Assembly: GCF_000737315.1 (NCBI RefSeq)
Contig: NZ_JMCB01000004.1
Location: 476,314 to 540,313, forward strand
Length of the DNA: 64,000 bases
Direction of reading: 5' to 3'
Source of the DNA: Hyalangium minutum
Lineage (GTDB): Bacteria; Myxococcota; Myxococcia; Myxococcales; Myxococcaceae
In this document: piece after piece, positions 1-9,069 of the stretch
Numbering within the stretch: the stretch's first letter is position 1
How the letters are laid out: each line of letters opens with the position of its first letter
Notes under the pieces: generated by a model
Told to the model about the DNA's origin: nothing
Seen by the model: the letters and a program-made list of their open reading frames with translations, nothing else
Database searches by the model: none
Position numbers and translations under genes: made by a program

Positions 1-2610
1 CAATACACGTGGGCCTTGGGTGCTGGGTACAACTTCATGATCGATGACACGCCACTGGCCCCTATTAGCGATCCCAGCTCGTGGTGGACCATCCCGAACC
101 TGAATGAGGGCACTTACAGCGAAGCCTCGATCGCCTATCTGGGGGCGGGCCTCGACGCGCAACAAGCGTACACCGGGTTTGCGCTTTACGATGGCCACGT
201 GGTGGGAAACCAGACGACTCCCGTGACGCGGGTGATCGATGGCGAGACGCGCTACCCCTTCGTCATGCATCCCGCGTATGTCTATGGCTCCCTCCGGCTG
301 GTGGATCCCTACGTCTCGCAGCACCCGGGAGCCCGAAGCGCGCTGCAGTCCCTGCACTTCGGCATCAGTGACACCGACCCCCCAGGGTATCCCGGCTGCT
401 TCTCCTGCGGCACCCTGCTCAACACCCAAGGAAGTACCGGGAACAGCAATGTCGCTGCGTTCCGGGGGAGCTTCGATCCGTCCACCGGCCAGCTCGTGTC
501 TGCCTACGAGCAGGTCCTGCTGAGCCCCTATGACTTGCCGACGCGGTGGGTGCAGGACTCCCTCCTGCTGAGCTTCCGCTCCTCTGCGGGAGACACGGAT
601 CCCACCCGCCACCTGAATGGCGAACTCACGCTCCGGCAGGCGCAGAACAGCGCGGAGCTGGCGGCGGGCGACCGCTTCCGCGTCGATCACGAGTACTGCT
701 TCAATGAGATCGATCTGGAGTTCTGGAACACGCAGTCCCGCTTCTTCCAACCCCTCGTCACGGTGACGGGCTCGTTCACGGGCTCGGACTGGCGGGGGCA
801 GGCAGCTTCCTACACGGCCGAGGGCACCTCCCGCGGAACGCCACTCACCTACGAGACGGCCGCGCCTCAGGGCTCGCTGCACCTGACGATCCCGCAGGGC
901 ACCTACACGCTGGCGCCGAGCGCCCAGATGGTGAACTCCGCCGGCCAGGTGAACAGCGCCAACTTCGCGCCCATCTCCATGCAGCTGGGCTGCGGGCAGC
1001 GCCTCAAGGTGGTGCCTCCGCTCACGGTGTCCCTCTCTCCTCTTCCCGGGTGCGCACAGTCTTCCTCTGCCACGGTGACAGGGGTGGTGCGGAGCGGTCC
1101 GGCCCTGGTGGATCGGGTGTGGTACCGGCTCAACGGTGGGCCCGAGGTGGTGCTGTGCCAGTCCTGCGGCACCGACCCCTCCTTCTCATTCACCGTGCCG
1201 CTGCAGGCCTGTGGCAACTCGGTGGAGGTGCTCGCCTTCACCGACGGCATGCCCGAGCCCGCCGTGGGCTACCAGCAGCTCATCTGGGATGATCCGGCGG
1301 ACGGGCCCAGCTGCTCCGGCGCCTACTGCGTCAACCGCCCTCCCGTGGCCCGCTGCCGCAGCGCGACGCTGTCCGTGGGGCCGGCGTGCGGCCCCTTGAG
1401 TGCCTCTATCAACGATGGCTCGTTCGATCCGGACAGCGGGGACACGGTGACGTGCGTGCAGTCGCCCACGGGCCCCTACGGCGTGGGCTCTCGGCGGGTG
1501 ACACTGACGTGCACGGACTCGACGGGGTTGTCCTCCTCGTGTGCGGCCCAGGTGACGATCCTGGATGGCACGGCTCCGGTCCTTCACTGCCCCGCCTCAG
1601 TGCCGACCTGCCCCGGTGAGAGCGGAACGGTGACGGGGGTGACGGCCACGGACAGCTGTGGGGCTGCACCGGCGGTGACGTGCTCCACCTCGGCGAGCCA
1701 GGTAACGTGCACCGCGACAGATGTTGCGGGCAACAGTGCCAGCTGCGCGTTCACGTGCGGAGGCGGCGGGGACGATGGCGGCGGCGGAGATGATGGCGGC
1801 GGTGGGGACGATGGTGGCGGGGGCACCGGGTGCATCGACGTCCAGCTGAATGACTTCAACCTCTTCGTGCTGGAGGACTACTCGGGCGGCCACGACGTCC
1901 AGGGGAAGGTGGCGGCTGGTGGCCACATCACGATGACCGACTTCGCCGTGGGCGCGGGAGTCTCGGACACGTCCATTGCCCAGACCCTGGTGGCGGGAGG
2001 CAACCTGAGCCTCTCCCGCGGTGGCGTCTGGGGCGATGCATGGCATGGCGGCAGCTACTCCGCCGATCCGTCCGTGAGCTTCAGCCGAGGGACGGTGTCC
2101 CAGGGCACGCCCATCGATTTCACGGCCCGAGGAGCCCAGCTGCGCAACCTGTCCTCCCGGCTGGCCGCGCTGCCGGCCAACGGCACGACGGTTCGCGAGA
2201 GCTGGGGCGGGGTCATGCTCAGCGGCACAGATCCGAACGTGAACGTGTTCGACGTGGATGCCAGCGCCTTCACGGGGGCCGTGTTGCTCTCCGTTCAAGC
2301 CCCCGCGAACTCCCTGGCGATCCTCAACATCCGAGGGGCGTCGGCTCGGTTCTCGGGCTTCGGGCACTCGTTCAGCGGCGGGATCGACCAGCACGGCGTG
2401 CTCTTCCACTTCGTGGATGCCACAGCGATCACGGCTCAGGGTTACGGCTTCTGGGGAACCGTGCTCGCGCCCCACGCGGCCGTGGACTTCAGCAACGGGA
2501 GCTTCGATGGCGGTATCTACGCCCGCTCGTTCACAGGCAGCGCCGAGGGCCACGTCAACGTCCTGTATGACCGCACCGTGTGTCCCTCGGCTCCGGTGAG
2601 TTCTCCGTAG
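1..2610 (+). CDS. Large secreted/surface protein with HYR/Ig-like Cys-rich modules and C-terminal choice-of-anchor A domain (5' partial)
   Basis: Frame is open from base 1 (QYTWALGAGYN). C-terminal FNLFVLEDYSGGHDVQGKVAAGG...GFWGTVLAPHAAVDFSNGSFDGGIYARSF matches choice-of-anchor A. NRPPVARC...VTLTCTD...ATDVAGNSASCAFT are HYR-like modules. Confidence 0.8.
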   Translation, partial: QYTWALGAGYNFMIDDTPLAPISDPSSWWTIPNLNEGTYSEASIAYLGAGLDAQQAYTGFALYDGHVVGNQTTPVTRVIDGETRYPFVMHPAYVYGSLRLVDPYVSQHPGARSALQSLHFGISDTDPPGYPGCFSCGTLLNTQGSTGNSNVAAFRGSFDPSTGQLVSAYEQVLLSPYDLPTRWVQDSLLLSFRSSAGDTDPTRHLNGELTLRQAQNSAELAAGDRFRVDHEYCFNEIDLEFWNTQSRFFQPLVTVTGSFTGSDWRGQAASYTAEGTSRGTPLTYETAAPQGSLHLTIPQGTYTLAPSAQMVNSAGQVNSANFAPISMQLGCGQRLKVVPPLTVSLSPLPGCAQSSSATVTGVVRSGPALVDRVWYRLNGGPEVVLCQSCGTDPSFSFTVPLQACGNSVEVLAFTDGMPEPAVGYQQLIWDDPADGPSCSGAYCVNRPPVARCRSATLSVGPACGPLSASINDGSFDPDSGDTVTCVQSPTGPYGVGSRRVTLTCTDSTGLSSSCAAQVTILDGTAPVLHCPASVPTCPGESGTVTGVTATDSCGAAPAVTCSTSASQVTCTATDVAGNSASCAFTCGGGGDDGGGGDDGGGGDDGGGGTGCIDVQLNDFNLFVLEDYSGGHDVQGKVAAGGHITMTDFAVGAGVSDTSIAQTLVAGGNLSLSRGGVWGDAWHGGSYSADPSVSFSRGTVSQGTPIDFTARGAQLRNLSSRLAALPANGTTVRESWGGVMLSGTDPNVNVFDVDASAFTGAVLLSVQAPANSLAILNIRGASARFSGFGHSFSGGIDQHGVLFHFVDATAITAQGYGFWGTVLAPHAAVDFSNGSFDGGIYARSFTGSAEGHVNVLYDRTVCPSAPVSSP
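1759..1824 (+). repeat. Coding tandem repeat, 18-bp unit, (GGGGDD)x3 linker
   Basis: ggaggcggcggggacgat ggcggcggcggagatgat ggcggcggtggggacgat ggtggcgggggc, seen directly. Confidence 0.9.
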
Positions 2611-2704: not shown

Positions 2705-3577
2705 TCAGTGGCTCGCTTCGTCGATGACCACCGACGTCTCGACATCCTGGTCGATGATCCGCACATCGCTCGTTCCACACGACTTCCTCGGCGAGCACCA
2801 CTCATTTCCGTCCGCGATCGCGAGGAGTTGATAGCGACCGGGCGGGAGTTCGAACGCGAAGGCTCCGTTTTCATCGGACATCGCTCGCGCAACGATTTCA
2901 GCCTCGGGGAAGTCTGGCCCGATCCCGCGAACGATGACCTCGCGCTGAATCCCGCGAGGCTTGCACTTGATCGGCGGCATGCAGTTGCCGGTGAGCAGAC
3001 CCACCTGGCCGTGCAGCTTGAACCGGGCATCGGGGGCGAGCGCACGCGGTGCGAAGAAGCGCAGGTGCGACAGGAACTCGTCGATCTCTTCGACAGGAGT
3101 CCGCTCCTCGAACTTGATCACGAGCAGTTCCTCACGGAGGTTCTTCACGTAGTAGGTGCGCTGCGCCGCAATCTGCACTCTCAAGGCGGGTCGCGTATCG
3201 ATCGTGACGTCGGTCACATCAGGCATCGGTACATAAGAACGCGGTGGGTGTCGGAACGAATCGAGCGTGCGGTCCGGATCGTCGAGAATGACGCTCACCC
3301 ACGCTGCGGCCCGCGTCGACCACCCAGATTCGTACGCGTGTGAGACCGAGAACGCGAGCTGACCCGGAGCCTCATCGGCGCTCCACCCCTCGGGTAGGCG
3401 TCCGGAGATGAGGAACTCCTCGGAACGGAAAGACGTGGGTCTCGGCATGGGCTCGGGCTCGCCGAGGAACTCCCTGGAACGGAAGGAGGAAGTGGACCTC
3501 AGCACGAGTCCGACTCCGATGGCGGCAGCCACTGCGGCCATGATGACCGCGATCCTCACGAGCTTCATCATGCGCAT
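2705..3577 (-). CDS. Hypothetical exported protein with C-terminal carboxypeptidase-regulatory-like (transthyretin-fold) domain
   Basis: N-terminal hydrophobic helix, a short internal duplication SFRSREFL/SFRSEEFL, and C-terminal ARAMSDENGAFAFELPPGRYQLLA. Confidence 0.6.
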   Translation of the reverse strand: MRMMKLVRIAVIMAAVAAAIGVGLVLRSTSSFRSREFLGEPEPMPRPTSFRSEEFLISGRLPEGWSADEAPGQLAFSVSHAYESGWSTRAAAWVSVILDDPDRTLDSFRHPPRSYVPMPDVTDVTIDTRPALRVQIAAQRTYYVKNLREELLVIKFEERTPVEEIDEFLSHLRFFAPRALAPDARFKLHGQVGLLTGNCMPPIKCKPRGIQREVIVRGIGPDFPEAEIVARAMSDENGAFAFELPPGRYQLLAIADGNEWCSPRKSCGTSDVRIIDQDVETSVVIDEASH

Positions 3578-3715
3578 GGGGCTCAGGATAGGAGATTTTC
3601 ACGAACGAGGGCATCGCCGGAATCTGGGTCGCCCCATAGCCGTCGACGGGCCCACTCCATCCCCGCTCCGTGGCAGCATGGCCCCCACGTCCACCCAAGC
3701 GAGGCAGGTCCAGGG

Positions 3716-4900
3716 ATGAAGATCGATATGTTCTGCGAGATGATCAAGCCGAAGGAGTTCTTCGGGGAAGGTCAGGAGCACACGCTGTTCCTCGAGACGC
3801 TCGCCCAGGCGCAGCTCGCGGACGAGCTCGGTTACGGTTGCTGGTGGCAGGTCGAGCACCACGCCGCGCCCCAGTTCAGCTACAGCTCGGCTCCAGAGCT
3901 GATGCTCACCGCGATCGCGCGTTCGACGCGGCAGATGCGTGTCGGGCACTCGGCCGTGCTCGCGCCCGTCAGGATCAACCACCCGCTTCGGATCGCCGAG
4001 CGAGCGGCGTTTCTCGATCACCTCAGCGAAGGCCGGCTCGAGCTGGGCCTCGCGCGCGCGTCGGTTCCCGAGTGGCGCGTGTTCGGCATCGAGCCCGACG
4101 ACGCTCGCCGGCAACTGCAGCAGGCCTTCGAGATGATCCCGAAGATGTGGACGCAGGAGCGTTTCTCGTGGAGCAGCCCTGACTTTACAATCAAGGACGC
4201 CACGGTGGTTCCCAAGCCGGTGCAGAAGCCCCACCCGCGGCTGTGGCAGGCGGCCGTCACGCCCAGCGGTTTCGCGCAGGCCGGACGCAACGGAGTGGGC
4301 GTGCTGCTCACCACGATAGCGACGCCGATCGAAGCGGTCGTGGAGATGCTCGGGGTGTATCGCGGAGAGATCCAGCGCTGCCAGCCGGTGGGCGAGACCG
4401 TCAACGATCAGGTCGCGCTGTTCACGTTCGTGCACTGCGCGGAGACCGAGCGCGAGGCCATCGAGCATGGCGCGGCGGCGGCGGCGGCTTGGTACATCAA
4501 TATGGTCTTCACATTCTTCGAGGCACGCGAAGTCATGACGCGCACGATCGACGAGATGGCGGCGGCGGTCAGTCGAGACCCGGACAGCCCGCTCGCCGCG
4601 TATGCGCGGCTCGCCGCGCAGAAGGCCGCCCTGCCCAAGAGCCCCCTGACGTCGATGCTCGATCGGATGATGGCGGGCGAGCCGGTCTCGAACGAAGAGG
4701 TGTACGAGACCCTCACCGCCGACGCCGCGGTGATCATCGGCGATGTCGCGTCGTGCCGTAAGAAGATGCAGCGCTACCAGGACGTCGGTATCGACCGCCT
4801 GATGTGCTTCCAACAACTCGGTCACCTGCCCCACGAGCACATCATGAAGAGCATCCGGCTTGTCGGAGAGCACCTGATCCCAGTGTTCGATCCGAAGTGA
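3716..4900 (+). CDS. LLM-class (luciferase-like) flavin-dependent monooxygenase
   Basis: QAQLADELGYGCWWQVEHH, HPLRIAERAAFLDHLSEGRLELGLAR, PKPVQKPHPRLWQAA and SIRLVGEHLIP are typical LLM motifs. Confidence 0.9.
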   Translation: MKIDMFCEMIKPKEFFGEGQEHTLFLETLAQAQLADELGYGCWWQVEHHAAPQFSYSSAPELMLTAIARSTRQMRVGHSAVLAPVRINHPLRIAERAAFLDHLSEGRLELGLARASVPEWRVFGIEPDDARRQLQQAFEMIPKMWTQERFSWSSPDFTIKDATVVPKPVQKPHPRLWQAAVTPSGFAQAGRNGVGVLLTTIATPIEAVVEMLGVYRGEIQRCQPVGETVNDQVALFTFVHCAETEREAIEHGAAAAAAWYINMVFTFFEAREVMTRTIDEMAAAVSRDPDSPLAAYARLAAQKAALPKSPLTSMLDRMMAGEPVSNEEVYETLTADAAVIIGDVASCRKKMQRYQDVGIDRLMCFQQLGHLPHEHIMKSIRLVGEHLIPVFDPK

Positions 4901-5102
4901 GGCGCGAAGCCCGCCTCAGAGGACTCGGACGACAACCACGGCGCTCCCGATGTCGACCCGTCCGAGGGGCCTTTCGGCGAAACAGACACGACTGGCGACG
5001 AATAGCGACGCCGGCTCGCTTGGCAGGCGGAACGATGGAGTGCACACTTCGGCTCGACACGCACGGAGTGCGCTCTCAGGCAGACCCACGTCGGCATCGA
5101 CC

Positions 5103-6632
5103 ATGACCCAGCCAGACAAGCTCACCGAGGTTTTCGAGAAACTGCACGGGCCCGCTGGGCTGGAGTCGCGGCTCCAAGAGCGCAACGAGACGCCTCTGAT
5201 CTGGGCCGTGAGCGAGGGGTATCACGACATCGCGCTGACCTTGATCGAGGCCGGTGCCGACCTGAACGCGCAGAACACCGACGGCAACACGGCGTTGCTC
5301 CGGGCCGCCTGCGAGAATCGCGCGGAGCTCGCCAGCGTCTTGATCAAGGTGGGCGCGAAGCTCGACGTCCAGAACAACGACGGGTACTCCGCGCTCATCC
5401 TCGCGCGGCGCCGGGGCAACAGGGAGATCGTCGACAGCTTGCAGGCGGCAGGAGCGGATCCGAGCCTGGTCACGCGACTCGGGACGACCTTCGACAACCC
5501 GGGCGATTCGCGGAAGACTTCGCTCGAGGGCCGCCGCGATGCGGTTCTGGAGAAGAAGATCATCGACGCCATCTCGAAGTGCCGCGACGGAAGGATGGCG
5601 GGCAGGGAGCTCGAAAAGTACGTCAACCTGAATCCCGAGGACCGGTTCGTACCGACCTCCGTCCTTCGCCGCGCCTACGTCCGCTACGACGGGTCCCACA
5701 ATCCCTCGGCGCCCAATTACGTGCTCCTCGACGATGACATGGAGCTCGGCATCGTCTCGAGCGCCGTTCCCGAAATCGCGCGCGCAGTCTCCTCGCTGCT
5801 CAGCCGCTCACTCGAGGACGCGCGCAACGACCGCGAGGGCCATTTGCCCGCGGCGGTCGTCAGGCGCGTGCAACTCGAGATCATCTCGCCGTACGGCGTC
5901 GCGCATATCTGGGGCGTCACGGGCCATCGGTTCGTGCTGTCGCGGCGCGTGAGTCCCGATCGAAGCGAGCTCCTCGCGACCATCCTCGTCGGACGGAGCA
6001 AGGACACGGTGTTCTTCTTCACCGGCCGTTACAACAATCTGAGGCACTCGACGATCCGCGAGACCGTCGACTTCGACCAGCCCGACGGCGACGATCCCGC
6101 GCACAAGTGGTTCGACAGGTTCGCCTTCCCCGAGATCAGTCGCTTCAAACCGAAGGGCTACCACCACATCGCGAACTTCGTTGTCTGCAAGGAGGAGCGC
6201 GGGCGCAAGCTCGCCCAGTTCGTGCTCGACAAGATCGTGGAGAAGTACGCTCGCGACCACCTCGACAAGCACCAGCGCGCCGTCGAGCACTCGCAGCACC
6301 TGCTGTGCGGTAAGGGCTTCTGGCAGATCGGCGACCCGCCCTGGCTCCCGCGCATGGAGAAGCTCGGCTTCCGCCTGCGGTTGGGCGCCGAGAGCTTCTT
6401 CATCGAGCACGACTGGGCCCGCTTGCCCGCGATCTTCGACCGAAAGACCGGCGAGCCGATCTCCAACGTGGCCTACAACAAGTTCTACGGGCTCCCGCAG
6501 CGATATCAGAGCTGGAAGCCGACGGGAGACACCTCCGAGTCCCTTCTCGATCGGGTGCCCGAGGTGATCCGGCTGTCGCAGGACCCCAAGGCCAAACTGC
6601 AATACTTCCAAGCCATGTTCGACTTCGTATGA
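5103..6632 (+). CDS. Ankyrin-repeat protein with C-terminal GNAT-like acyltransferase domain
   Basis: Three ankyrin repeats (ETPLIWA, GNTALLRA, GYSALILA). HIANFVVCKEERGRKLAQFVL resembles the GNAT acetyl-CoA-binding motif A, and RMEKLGF resembles motif B. An in-frame upstream ATG exists at 4950. Confidence 0.65.
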   Translation: MTQPDKLTEVFEKLHGPAGLESRLQERNETPLIWAVSEGYHDIALTLIEAGADLNAQNTDGNTALLRAACENRAELASVLIKVGAKLDVQNNDGYSALILARRRGNREIVDSLQAAGADPSLVTRLGTTFDNPGDSRKTSLEGRRDAVLEKKIIDAISKCRDGRMAGRELEKYVNLNPEDRFVPTSVLRRAYVRYDGSHNPSAPNYVLLDDDMELGIVSSAVPEIARAVSSLLSRSLEDARNDREGHLPAAVVRRVQLEIISPYGVAHIWGVTGHRFVLSRRVSPDRSELLATILVGRSKDTVFFFTGRYNNLRHSTIRETVDFDQPDGDDPAHKWFDRFAFPEISRFKPKGYHHIANFVVCKEERGRKLAQFVLDKIVEKYARDHLDKHQRAVEHSQHLLCGKGFWQIGDPPWLPRMEKLGFRLRLGAESFFIEHDWARLPAIFDRKTGEPISNVAYNKFYGLPQRYQSWKPTGDTSESLLDRVPEVIRLSQDPKAKLQYFQAMFDFV

Positions 6633-7510
6633 ACCTCAAACACCTTCGACAAGAACACACGCTCGACTCGCAGCAGATCGCCCCGTTCACCGGCGAAGGC
6701 GCCTACCACGGGTCGACCCGCAAACGAGCGGCCCGCTCCGCGAGCGCACCGCAGCCGGTCGTCGTCGAGGAGATGCGACCCACCACGCTCGACGCGTACC
6801 CGCTCGACGGGTCGCGCCCGATCGCAGAGTTCGAAGCCACCTTCCCGAACCTCTACACCGTCGAGCGCGTCCTGCCGGTCCCAACGCAGGAAGAGGTCCG
6901 CAGCGATGGCGTCACGCTCTGCTGGTGTCCCCTCGAGGAGGCCCTCGAGGTGGCGGGACCGCTGACCCGGCGCGTGCTCGAAGCGATGAAGGAGTTGCTC
7001 ATCGGCGACAAGCGCTTCGTCTACGTCGACTCGAAGATCCAATATTTCGAGCCGGGTGACGTGCCTGTCGACAGCCAGCACTGGCACGTGGATGGGAGCA
7101 TCGTGGCCCGAGGTCCCGCGGTCGAAGCGCTCGGCCACAACCTTCTGCACGACATGAAGGCGAGGCTCGCGAGCGGCGTGGTCCCGCCTCGGTATCTCGC
7201 CTATCAATCGTCCGATCACTGCGCGACCCTCTTCGCGACCTCGCCCGTCACGATGACGCTGCCCGAGCTCATTCCCAACTTCGACGGCCTGGACGCTCAC
7301 ATTCGCGCGCTCTCGCCGCCTATCGTGGCGCAACCGGCGTCCTCGATCGTGCGCACCGACGGGCTCTCGCTGCATCGCGCGCAGGCCGCCTCGGGCGCAG
7401 GCTGGAGACTTTGGGTTCGTTGCGTCGAGACGGACCGTGAGGTCCTGCTCGATTCATCGATCATCGAGTGTTACGGCACGGTGTTCAGGCCGAGTGCCGT
7501 CACGAGGTGA
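6629..7510 (+). CDS. Putative Fe(II)/2-oxoglutarate-dependent oxygenase (DSBH fold)
   Basis: HWHVDG (HxD), distal LHRA (His) and GWRLWVR (Arg for 2OG). ATGA overlap with the upstream stop codon. Confidence 0.6.
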   Translation: MNLKHLRQEHTLDSQQIAPFTGEGAYHGSTRKRAARSASAPQPVVVEEMRPTTLDAYPLDGSRPIAEFEATFPNLYTVERVLPVPTQEEVRSDGVTLCWCPLEEALEVAGPLTRRVLEAMKELLIGDKRFVYVDSKIQYFEPGDVPVDSQHWHVDGSIVARGPAVEALGHNLLHDMKARLASGVVPPRYLAYQSSDHCATLFATSPVTMTLPELIPNFDGLDAHIRALSPPIVAQPASSIVRTDGLSLHRAQAASGAGWRLWVRCVETDREVLLDSSIIECYGTVFRPSAVTR

Positions 7511-7598
7511 CCCTTGTGAGCCGACGAGGAGCGCTCGATCGGCAAGATACCCACGCTCGTTCCATGGCAGCGCTCTGCTACGATTCCCGCCGAGCGGC

Positions 7599-7621
7599 GG
7601 TTCGATTCCCGCCGCCTCCAC
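7599..7621 (+). mobile_element. ssrA: Fragment of the tmRNA 3' end (T-loop plus acceptor strand); att-like scar
   Basis: ggttcgattcccgccgcctccac gives T-loop TTCGATT, 3' T-stem CCCGC, and acceptor strand CGCCTCC-A, which would pair with a 5' GGGGGCG including the G3-U70 pair. No 5' half is nearby. Confidence 0.6.
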
Positions 7622-7626
7622 TCTGC

Positions 7627-9069
7627 TTAGAATGTGAGGAGCATCCCCGTCTCGATGCCCGCAGTGCTGCGTCGGCCCGCGTCCCCACCGAACTCCGCTA
7701 TGTCGGGCGCCTGCAGCACGTAGTGGGACTGGTAGAGGAAGCCCTCCACCATCAGGGCGAGCGCTGAGCCCGGCTTGAACTCGTAGCCCAAGCGGGCGGC
7801 TCCGTTGCGGGTCATGCCCGGCCCCGTGCCGCTCAGCGCCGCGCTGGAGATCGCCGGCCGCGTGGTTCCCGTCGACGCGGGATACGCGTAGGCGGGCACC
7901 ACGTCGCCCGGATTCAGCACGCGCTGCAGACCCGCCAGCGCGTAGAGCGCGTGCTGGGGCGTGAAGGCATGGCGCGCCGAGATGAAGCCGCCCACGTCCC
8001 GCACGTCCTGATCCACACGCCCCTGCGACAGCGAGAGCATGCCCAGGTTGGCGGTGTTCTGGCCCAGGTTGAGCTCCACGCGCACCGTGGTGGCTGGGGA
8101 GGGAATCAGCTCCGAGTAGAGCGCGCCCTGATACGACAGGCCGTGGCGCTCCTGCGGCGAGGCCGTGGCATAGGTCAGGCGCGAGAGGAGCACGCTCGCT
8201 CCCACGCGGCTCGTGCCGAATTTGTACGCCCCACGCGCGGCCACGGTGGGCACGCGGGCCAGCTCCAGCGCGGCATCCTTGGCCGTGGCGTTGGCCGCGG
8301 GGAAGCCCAGCGCCACGCCCAGCTCATAGGTGTCCTGCGCGCGGATGTACCGGAGCTGCTGGCGCATGAAGCCGGTGTTGCCGGCGGTGAACAGCGCGCC
8401 TACCATGTTGATGCCGTGCGGGTTGAGCGGTGCCGCCAGATCCCAGTCCTGCCCGAGCGACAGCGTATGGCCGGGCGCAGGCACCCAGTCCACCCGCGCG
8501 ATGCGCAGGCGCGGCAGGGCCTGCACCGTGGGCGTGGCCTTGGCGAAGTCGACGAAGTCCACCTCCACCTGGCCGCGCAGCGATCCCTTCTCATTCACCC
8601 ACAGCCCGAGCCGGGACTGGCCCACCTGGGCGGAGAGGCGTGCCTCGTCCGGCAGGGTGGGGATCACCGGATCTCCTGCGGCACTGGGCGCCGTCTCGTT
8701 GGGCTGGTTGAAGGACGCCACCGCCCCCGAGGCCACCACCAGGCGCACGTTGAGGGTGCCATACGGGCGCAGCACGTTCTCCGGGGCTGGGGTGGGTGGT
8801 GCCGGAGGAGCAGGCGGTGCTGGAGGCGCGGGTGGTGCTGGAGGCGCGGGTGGTACTGGAGGCGCGGGTGGTGCTGGAGGCGCTGGAGGCCCGGGCGGTG
8901 CCGGAGGCGCGGGCGGCTCCGCGGGTGTCGCCGACGGGGACTCCTTGGCCTCCGGTGCGGACTGGGTCAGTACTGAGGCGCTCACGCTCCGCGGAGCGTC
9001 CAGGGGGGAGGCCTGGGCCTCGCTCACGGCGGATACGGCGAGCACTGCGACAAGACGCAACACAGCCAT
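7627..9069 (-). CDS. Outer-membrane porin, DcaP-like, with Pro/Ala-rich N-terminal linker
   Basis: Signal peptide, then SRLGLW...GQVEVDF...PRLRIARVDW...LGQDWDLAAPLNP, terminal aromatic residue (LLTF), directly downstream of an MFS gene. Confidence 0.6.
   Translation of the reverse strand: MAVLRLVAVLAVSAVSEAQASPLDAPRSVSASVLTQSAPEAKESPSATPAEPPAPPAPPGPPAPPAPPAPPVPPAPPAPPAPPAPPAPPAPPTPAPENVLRPYGTLNVRLVVASGAVASFNQPNETAPSAAGDPVIPTLPDEARLSAQVGQSRLGLWVNEKGSLRGQVEVDFVDFAKATPTVQALPRLRIARVDWVPAPGHTLSLGQDWDLAAPLNPHGINMVGALFTAGNTGFMRQQLRYIRAQDTYELGVALGFPAANATAKDAALELARVPTVAARGAYKFGTSRVGASVLLSRLTYATASPQERHGLSYQGALYSELIPSPATTVRVELNLGQNTANLGMLSLSQGRVDQDVRDVGGFISARHAFTPQHALYALAGLQRVLNPGDVVPAYAYPASTGTTRPAISSAALSGTGPGMTRNGAARLGYEFKPGSALALMVEGFLYQSHYVLQAPDIAEFGGDAGRRSTAGIETGMLLTF
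8782..8920 (-). repeat. Coding (PAP)n low-complexity repeat, 9/18-bp units
   Basis: ggtgctggaggcgcgggt-like units are repeated on the + strand and encode PAPPAPPAP on the - strand. Confidence 0.85.

Follow-up and report, generated by a model that had tools for sequence, protein, structure and literature searches.

Candidate two-enzyme module of an ankyrin-GNAT protein and a DSBH oxygenase-type protein in Hyalangium minutum and other bacteria

Do three adjacent, co-oriented genes of Hyalangium minutum belong to one enzymatic system? The question is raised by a 64-kb stretch of DNA (64,000 nucleotides, hereafter the window) from contig JMCB01000004.1 of source assembly GCA_000737315.1, which is that of H. 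minutum DSM 14724 (PMC5441343). A sequence-only reading of the window had singled out a luciferase-like monooxygenase (LLM; gene A), a protein with ankyrin repeats fused to a GNAT-like domain (gene B), and a protein carrying the facial triad of Fe(II)/2-oxoglutarate (2OG) oxygenases (gene C), and had proposed that the three genes form one tailoring system for oxidation plus acylation. The three open reading frames (ORFs) were confirmed as co-oriented on the plus strand at 3716-7510, and all of the domain calls (LLM, ankyrin, GNAT-like domain, and Fe/2OG-type facial triad) were found to be correct. The survey of gene neighborhoods that the same reading had suggested supported the conserved co-occurrence of genes B and C but not that of the LLM gene with them. 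As judged from the comparison of genomes, the functional unit is a self-contained two-gene module of ~2.6 kb (about 5003-7575).

A pattern scan for gene C, with one genome per species, found 58 loci, and a homologue of gene B was located directly upstream on the same strand in 57 of them. This adjacency is far beyond chance, and the pairing is essentially obligate. The translational coupling noticed at the outset is real, as the start of gene C overlaps the stop of gene B by ATGA; the identical 4-nt overlap occurs in 22 of the 57 loci, with near-zero spacing in most of the others. Moreover, the identities of B and C to their counterparts in the window co-vary across loci (r = 0.93). Homologues of the other genes that flank the pair in the window were likewise missing within 10 kb at all 58 loci, and an all-against-all comparison of the ORFs of these loci revealed no conserved third gene. 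A neighbor family present in 20 loci was considered as a third gene and rejected, since it is a mixture of sensor and Ser/Thr kinases whose distance and orientation vary and which belong to the Myxococcota background. The contexts inspected one by one (Labilithrix, Polyangiaceae, Nannocystis, Planctomycetota, and Pyxidicoccus) all differed.

The LLM gene has a different history. Gene A clearly matched Pfam Bac_luciferase (E = 1.4e-41; 143 bits vs. a cut-off of 27.9) and reached no NCBIfam subfamily cut-off, its best score (108 bits) lying under that of the family concerned. Its closest relatives are found in H. versicolor (95% identical) and H. rubrum (84%), other myxobacterial LLMs being about 55-58% identical, and in both of these congeners the LLM gene is present without B-C beside it. 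At the DNA level, the gene forms an island of similarity (3671-4906; 94% to H. versicolor and 87% to H. rubrum) that is bordered on either side by unrelated DNA, and this stretch of the Hyalangium genome is, by all appearances, highly mosaic. A three-enzyme tailoring pathway is suggested by the adjacency and shared orientation of the genes in H. minutum. It had been staked beforehand on co-occurrence elsewhere and did not survive the comparison, given that LLM homologues are lacking within 10 kb of the pair at all 58 loci of other genomes, that LLM orthologues occur in two congeners without the pair, that the transferred DNA described below begins downstream of the LLM gene at about 5003, and that the 202-bp gap between LLM and gene B contains the conserved leader of gene B itself. 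In addition, a scaffold gene, transporter, and regulator were absent from every context examined, which weakens the idea of a tailoring pathway as such. We therefore leave the three-enzyme pathway next to no probability. The LLM gene is a gene of the Hyalangium lineage that stands beside B-C by positional coincidence and is not part of the module, and it should not be annotated as a member of the B-C unit.

The coordinates of the module and of its neighbor are collected in the table. The start of gene B corresponds to Met52 of a 560-aa ORF opening at 4950, as supported by about 380 homologues and by the source record; homologues are 503-529 aa long, and the ATG at 4950, which would add a 51-aa extension, was rejected as being unsupported by either. 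Rfam detected no riboswitch or tRNA-like family at 4700-7900. For the leader, a sigma-70 scan gave no consensus match and a manual check did not fit the sigma-54 consensus. A terminator scan gave one terminator-like match, located inside gene B on the minus strand and below chance expectation.

Table. Features of the B-C module and the adjacent LLM gene in the window (aa, amino acids; AF2, AlphaFold2; DSBH, double-stranded beta-helix; HMM, hidden Markov model; UTR, untranslated region)
Feature	Coordinates	Strand	Basis or remark
Gene A, LLM-class flavin-dependent oxidoreductase, 394 aa	3716..4900	+	Pfam Bac_luciferase; bystander, outside module
Leader, ~100 bp, conserved; putative promoter or 5' UTR	5003..5102	+	DNA similarity to relatives
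Gene B, ankyrin-GNAT protein, 509 aa	5103..6632	+	Start by homologues and the source record's gene call
Three ankyrin repeats, aa 28-121 of B (509-aa form)	5184..5465	+	Pfam Ank_2, Ank, Ank_4; Foldseek
Predicted GNAT-type acyltransferase core with large insertions, aa 166-509 of B (344 aa)	5598..6629	+	Alignment, AF2
Invariant loop FFFTGRYNNLRHS, aa 304-316 of B, in b3-b4 insertion	6012..6050	+	Invariant alignment columns
GNAT motif A (b4-a3, acyl-CoA pyrophosphate-binding region) YHHIANFVVCKEERGRKLAQFVLDKIVEKYA	6159..6251	+	Pfam Acetyltransf_1, _7, _10; hhalign
GNAT motif B (b5-a4) PPWLPRMEKLGF, aa 412-423 of B	6336..6371	+	Read from sequence; invariant R417, M418, L421, F423
ATGA start/stop overlap of B and C	6629..6632	+	GTATGAAC at 6627-6634
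Gene C, Fe(II)/2-oxoglutarate-type DSBH protein, 293 aa	6629..7510	+	AF2 model, Foldseek, phrog_1843 HMM
Glycine-rich N-terminal loop FTGEGAYHGST, aa 20-30 of C, invariant	6686..6718	+	Alignment; low-confidence in model
HWHVDG, proximal His153 and Asp155 of the triad	7079..7096	+	On or just after short strand in model
SLHRA...GWRLWVR, distal His249, Arg260, Arg264	7367..7420	+	Model strands 248-251, 258-268
Downstream tail, <=65 bp, common to the Pyxidicoccus caerfyrddinensis copy; right edge of transferred segment	7511..7575	+	

The pair appears to have been transferred recently. Window DNA is 95-97% identical to that of Pyxidicoccus caerfyrddinensis and two copies in Myxococcaceae metagenome-assembled genomes (MAGs), and this similarity is confined to 4948/5005-7512/7575; end alignments with Pyxidicoccus sp. 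MSG2 gave the same boundaries. The rest of the 64-kb window had no match in these closest loci, whose flanks are unrelated, and in the leader the similarity to the Pyxidicoccus and Myxococcaceae MAG copies begins at AGCGACGCCGGCTCGCTTGGCAGG..., the sequence further upstream being unrelated. Synonymous divergence (dS) of B-C was 0.05-0.10 against the Pyxidicoccus and Myxococcaceae MAG copies (0.045-0.066 for P. caerfyrddinensis, which belongs to a different family), 0.52-0.53 against a Labilithrix MAG, and 0.66-0.69 against a Polyangiaceae MAG. For the LLM gene, dS was 0.18 against H. versicolor and 0.35 against H. rubrum. The divergence of B-C from Pyxidicoccus is thus lower than that of the LLM gene from its own congeners, which is strong evidence that B-C was recently transferred horizontally within Myxococcota. 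Because the LLM flanks are unrelated even in congeners, missing synteny alone is weak evidence here, and the dS argument is the stronger one. Furthermore, the ratio of nonsynonymous to synonymous divergence (dN/dS) was 0.12-0.42, mostly <0.3, indicating that B-C is under purifying selection.

Most of the 58 loci belong to Myxococcota, spread over many families. The others include three Planctomycetota MAGs, one Saprospiraceae locus, about eight loci of Patescibacteria or the candidate phyla radiation (CPR; Paceibacterota, Uhrbacteria, and Saccharibacteria, some on contigs of 0.36-0.74 Mb), and two short contigs binned as Actinomycetes or Pseudomonadota, for which mis-binning is possible. The CPR copies share 60-64% (B) and 51-56% (C) protein identity with the window and sit among housekeeping and translation genes (mnmA, leuS, rpsB-tsf, and pgk-eno); at L059, the only CPR locus profiled in this respect, the pair and its surroundings have the same GC content. 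In three CPR genomes, a HIT-family protein of 157 aa (GGSITHLHSHIQVP histidine triad, CPFCG motif) is encoded directly downstream of gene C on the same strand (L056 10916-11416, L059 10956-11429, and L061 3478-3966); this protein might be a third component specific to the lineage, or the arrangement might reflect no more than shared synteny. No mobility gene was found with the module, and gene B was detected in none of the IMG/VR viral contigs, plasmids, and phage genomes searched.

A fragment resembling a tRNA 3' end (GGCGGTTCGATTCCCGCCGCCTCCA, window 7577-7622) lies ~70 bp after the stop of gene C and is preceded by a direct repeat, CGATTCCCGCCG (7580-7591 and 7603-7614). The same fragment directly follows gene C in Pyxidicoccus sp. 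MSG2 (about 10900-10935 of locus L068). ARAGORN and Rfam made no call on it, and it may be the scar of an old attachment or integration site. As a general integration signal, tRNA adjacency was rejected, since only orphan tRNA-3'-like fragments in a few loci and no systematic linkage were observed.

The ankyrin module of protein B was readily identified, with Ank_2 (E = 9e-19), Ank, and Ank_4 all over the Pfam cut-offs and with Foldseek matches of the full-length model to DARPin and tankyrase ARC domains (TM-score normalized by target, TMt, 0.7-0.8). For residues 166-509, the window protein alone gave no above-threshold match in Pfam, NCBIfam, or the PDB, and PDB sequence and profile searches with this core gave nothing meaningful. 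Its nature emerged from the family, whose cores are 49-97% identical across 57 genome loci. Generic Pfam GNAT models matched 28 of 33 family members weakly, in all cases on the motif A stretch YHHIANFVVxKExRGxxLAxxxL, and one member (P0238) passed the gathering score of Acetyltransf_1 (26 bits vs. 20.7). Moreover, hhalign aligned motif A of the family profile with residues 66-99 of Escherichia coli RimI (81% probability). The pyrophosphate loop reads RGxxLA/S and is one residue longer than the classical R/QxxGxG/A. The AF2 model of B, with a mean predicted local distance difference test (pLDDT) score of 80, shows a secondary-structure order compatible with GNAT (b1-a1-a2-b2-b3-[insert]-b4-a3-b5-a4-b6-[insert]-b7), that is, a single GNAT-like domain with large insertions after b3 and b6. 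The invariant loop FFFTGRYNNLRHS falls in the sole long segment with pLDDT <50 (aa 298-318). Taken together, B is predicted to be an acyl-CoA-dependent GNAT N-acyltransferase with an optional N-terminal module of three ankyrin repeats.

The ankyrin module is confined to a sub-clade with at least about 68% identity in protein C, and the other half of the family has a GNAT-only form of ~340 aa. Where present, the ankyrin domain is 61-98% identical, i.e., it evolves as slowly as the enzyme part. In one further sequence (P0112; 370 aa, from a cluster of 11 sequences, on a 12-kb JGI contig), the first ~1.5 ankyrin repeats of B are fused in frame to about residue 4 of C and the GNAT core is gone; this chimera arose either by a natural deletion or as an artefact of assembly. 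A candidate for a B-C Rosetta-stone fusion (P0251) was rejected as a frameshifted read-through.

For protein C, the sequence-only reading had proposed a check for the DSBH fold, and the outcome was positive. The AF2 model is confident (pLDDT 86; predicted TM-score, pTM, 0.86), and nearly all of its Foldseek neighbors in the PDB are Fe(II)/2OG oxygenases, namely EvdO1, AviO1, GriE, HalB/D, SadA (3w20/3w21), EctD, PhyH, KanJ, and proline hydroxylases; the top matches among predicted viral structures (BFVD) are likewise nearly all of this type, and the probabilities of the top matches in the two sets are 0.9-1.0. Neither C nor its distant relatives matched any Pfam or NCBIfam model at E values up to 1, and C had no meaningful sequence or profile match in the PDB. 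The lack of a match to any curated 2OG family points to a new sequence family within the superfamily. When C was aligned with relatives of 22-35% identity, including two phage proteins (24 sequences in all), the only invariant columns were F72, P146, W152, H153, D155, H249, R260, and R264. These residues spell out the motif WHxD...H-x10-R-x3-R, in which H153, D155, and H249 constitute the 2-His-1-carboxylate triad and are followed by R260 (H+11) and R264, and in the model the triad and both arginines are located on the strands expected for a DSBH enzyme. Fe(II)/2OG oxygenases bind the C5 carboxylate of 2OG through a basic residue in the strand that follows the distal His, a position occupied here by R260 and R264 (strand 258-268). 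By triad and predicted fold, C is a putative enzyme of the Fe/2OG DSBH superfamily and represents a new family, presumably of non-haem Fe(II)/2OG oxygenases.

An exhaustive HMM search with C returned a narrow full-length family surrounded by a halo of relatives of 170-245 aa that match the core only. The first 65 residues, including the loop FTGEGAYHGST, occur only in GNAT-linked members and are absent from the relatives of 220-245 aa and from the phage proteins. Such a loop invites the reading that the two proteins are enzyme and substrate of each other, with B acylating the N-terminal loop of C (FTGEGAYHGSTxKR, invariant and found in GNAT-linked members only) or with C hydroxylating Asn or Asp in the ankyrin repeats of B, so that one regulates the other. 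FIH-type enzymes hydroxylate a consensus ankyrin loop, and the repeats of B carry this consensus (...GADLNAQN...). This reading is nevertheless very unlikely, as C is equally conserved beside ankyrin-less forms of B and is not of the JmjC type.

The sequence-only reading had also remarked that the oxygenase resembles phage-type proteins, and this resemblance was borne out. Protein C matched the phrog_1843 HMM with E = 4.3e-20 (C residues 98-271 and profile positions 35-198 of 222), a family whose members are all unannotated. A tblastn search found genes encoding proteins 25-31% identical to C in 62 phage genomes, almost all labeled hypothetical, among them Certrevirus CR3/CR8/CR9 (Cronobacter), Yersinia phage phiR1-RT, Bacillus phage G (gp274), Gordonia phages, and Mycobacterium phages Rey, Aziz, and MrMagoo. 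The best BFVD match (E = 5.7e-9; TM-score normalized by query, TMq, 0.53) was better than those in the PDB. Two phage contexts of C homologues showed no GNAT neighbor, and the viral contigs of the nearest relatives of C that are not GNAT-linked (P0255 and P0269) yielded no loci. In Mycobacterium phage prophiT49-2, a large tRNA array and the genes for an RtcB-like RNA ligase and a peptidyl-tRNA hydrolase immediately precede a C homologue labeled 'oxidoreductase' (locus L071, 3899-4597). This translation-repair neighborhood may offer a clue to the class of substrates used in the phage clade. Protein C probably arose from the same stock as phrog_1843, the 65-aa N-terminal extension having been gained only in the GNAT-partnered lineage.

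Phage homologues of C, together with the patchy distribution of a coupled, mobile two-gene cassette, also bring to mind a conflict system (toxin-antitoxin, anti-phage, or effector-immunity) in which one enzyme would modify a conserved target and the other counteract or license it. GNAT toxins are known, and predatory or epibiotic lineages (Myxococcota, Saccharibacteria, and Saprospiraceae) are well represented among the hosts. Known GNAT toxin systems, however, consist of a small GNAT and a small DNA-binding antitoxin, as opposed to the 340-aa GNAT core and 293-aa enzyme partner found here, and the very slow evolution of the pair (see the dN/dS values above) is not the rapid diversification usual in conflict genes. 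PADLOC matched only the ankyrin repeats and nothing in C, neither a secretion signal nor linkage to a secretion system was detected, the CPR copies lie among housekeeping genes and not in defence islands, and searches of plasmids, phages, and IMG/VR contigs did not detect B. A conflict role is accordingly regarded as improbable.

What, then, would the pair do? From the features above we infer the enzymatic activity of B and C, the formation of a complex, the order of reactions, and the substrate. The two enzymes probably act on a common substrate, and the best explanation, in which we place somewhat more trust than doubt, is that B and C form a two-enzyme complex that would both hydroxylate and N-acylate one conserved target. 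The ATGA overlap would give a fixed B:C stoichiometry; within the complex, C would hydroxylate and B would N-acylate the same substrate, or one would act on the product of the other. The most conserved loops (FFFTGRYNN in B and FTGEGAYHGST in C) were modeled with low confidence, which fits segments that become ordered on a partner or substrate. The target we would favor is a macromolecule that is intracellular and conserved, with a protein as the likeliest case, and in one sub-clade the ankyrin repeats might serve as an accessory docking surface. Overall, the module would be accessory and horizontally spread, yet strongly constrained.

Several observations weigh against this proposal. Foldseek searches with the full-length model of B returned ankyrin and DARPin matches only and are silent on the GNAT core, so that the GNAT assignment rests on motifs and topology and not on a fold match. 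The GNAT motif B consensus is of the ...Y-E-K-L-G-F type, its Tyr being the usual general acid, and B has an invariant Met at this position and could therefore be catalytically unusual. The ankyrin module is missing in about half of the family and hence not essential to the mechanism. The PDB fold matches of C are weak despite probabilities of up to 0.98 (E about 2e-3; TM 0.25-0.33), and the solved enzymes that match best have small molecules rather than proteins as substrates; the H-x10-R spacing, too, is typical of the PhyH/TauD/EctD group, whose members mostly act on small molecules. Moreover, the sole exception to the pairing (L052), on a 4.3-kb contig, is an intact gene C behind a divergent TetR-like gene with no gene B upstream.

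Of the possible targets, a protein or other macromolecule is preferred tentatively, at somewhat less than even confidence. It is favored by the fact that half of the family carries a fused protein-binding module that evolves slowly, by constraint along the entire length of both proteins, by the most conserved loops being unplaceable by the model without a partner, and by the fact that pathway, transport, or regulatory genes are never nearby; the position of the CPR pair amid housekeeping and translation genes is a further hint. A small molecule as the substrate appears less likely. In that case, the GNAT would N-acylate a free amine (an amino acid, a polyamine, or an aminoacyl- or nucleotide-linked compound) and the oxygenase hydroxylate the product, or the reverse, with the outcome being a compatible-solute-like or signal-like metabolite or the inactivation of an exogenous toxin by a stand-alone mobile resistance pair. 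The nearest solved structures of C agree with such a role, as they include the N-succinyl-amino-acid dioxygenase SadA, the leucine hydroxylase GriE, the Lys/Orn halogenases HalB/HalD, the ectoine hydroxylase EctD, KanJ, and PhyH, and so does the H-x10-R spacing of the PhyH/TauD/EctD group. In addition, a sporadic and context-independent distribution, transferred yet conserved, is typical of resistance genes, and the gene after C in three CPR loci belongs to the HIT family of nucleotide phosphoramidase-type enzymes. In the microcin C system, aminoacyl-nucleotide antibiotics are detoxified by GNAT enzymes as well as by HIT enzymes (PMC7157772). The small-molecule module nonetheless remains doubtful, since the structural matches are weak (TM <=0.33), a transporter, regulator, or further pathway gene is never linked, a conserved protein-binding ankyrin module is fused in half of the family, a whole-length identity of 50-60% across phyla is high for a tailoring enzyme, and the HIT linkage is confined to three related genomes.

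The most far-reaching version of the complex on one conserved target would be a horizontally circulating hydroxylase and acyltransferase that modify a protein or the translation machinery, placing a combined modification on a universally conserved target in predatory Myxococcota and ultra-small CPR bacteria alike. Its oxygenase would descend from a phage family that is widespread but uncharacterized. We regard this as a rather unlikely but consequential idea; if true, it would also assign a function to phrog_1843.

The genes around the pair in the window do not accompany it elsewhere. On the minus strand, the flanks comprise an MFS transporter gene and two ORFs (480 and 290 aa) without Pfam match (9127-10977, 7627-9069, and 2705-3577). 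A T6SS_Tdi1_C immunity-like gene at 11157-11600 (plus strand) is absent beside the pair in other genomes. At 16-2610 (plus strand), a large protein resembling adhesins is encoded, in which a pAdhesive_15 domain (ice-binding-like) was identified and HYR matched weakly; the source record has a longer version of this gene (1147 aa) that starts upstream of the window. Located 4 kb from the pair, at 11605-15784 on the minus strand, are a C39-peptidase ABC exporter gene and two HlyD-type genes, the same three-gene exporter type as mccP1P2P3 of the microcin-C-like cluster of H. minutum (PMC7157772). A link between the pair and that cluster was considered and rejected, as no ThiF/MccB or HIT gene lies beside the exporter in the window; the exporter probably belongs to a different bacteriocin.

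Although both superfamilies are well known, neither the B nor the C family is described: B is recognizable only through ~35 residues of GNAT motif A, and C has no Pfam or NCBIfam model. The sequence-only reading had not recognized the ankyrin/GNAT/DSBH combination as a described system, and indeed Pfam, NCBIfam, PADLOC, and the searched literature, which included comparative-genomics surveys of GNAT ligases and of peptide-modifying dioxygenases, yielded no account of it. The pair unites seldom-combined traits, i.e., patchy horizontal spread (dS about 0.05 between myxobacterial families), >50-60% identity between phyla, and presence in genome-reduced CPR bacteria. Its characterization would define two new enzyme families and would probably reveal either a new acyl and hydroxyl modification or new detoxification chemistry. 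It would also provide the first functional handle on phrog_1843, which is present in Vequintavirinae-like, T4-like, Bacillus jumbo, and actinobacteriophage genomes.

Compared with known systems, the core of protein B shares motif A and a motif B-like ...EKLGF with canonical GNATs such as E. coli RimI, and its modeled secondary-structure order is compatible with theirs. It differs from them in its size (340 aa vs. about 150), the insertions after b3 and b6, the Met in place of the motif B Tyr, the RGxxLA/S loop, the optional ankyrin fusion, and the translational coupling to an oxygenase. Similarly, protein C has the DSBH fold, an HxD on strand II, and an Arg 11 residues past the distal His on the next strand in common with PhyH/TauD/EctD-type oxygenases (EctD, PhyH/PHYHD1, GriE, SadA, HalB, EvdO1, and KanJ), whereas it lacks sequence-level membership in this group, matches it structurally at TM 0.25-0.33 only, and has an N-terminal extension and an obligate GNAT partner. 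FIH, too, is a 2OG oxygenase tied to an ankyrin-repeat protein, but it is of the JmjC type, and the ankyrin module is dispensable in half of the B family. The members of phrog_1843 have a homologous DSBH core and share the invariant WHxD...H...RxxxR with C, whereas the phage and short members (about 170-245 aa) lack its 65-aa N-terminal extension, are functionally uncharacterized, and have no counterpart of B, for which no phage homologue was found. In ectoine synthesis (EctA/EctD) and in the case of SadA, an N-acyltransferase and a 2OG hydroxylase work in one pathway on an N-acylated amine. The B-C pair differs from these in that EctB/EctC, a desuccinylase, and further pathway genes are absent from all loci, and in sequence B resembles EctA at motif A only (E = 0.012). 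The predicted combination of acyltransferase and hydroxylase is nevertheless the same, and EctD and SadA are themselves among the structural neighbors of C.

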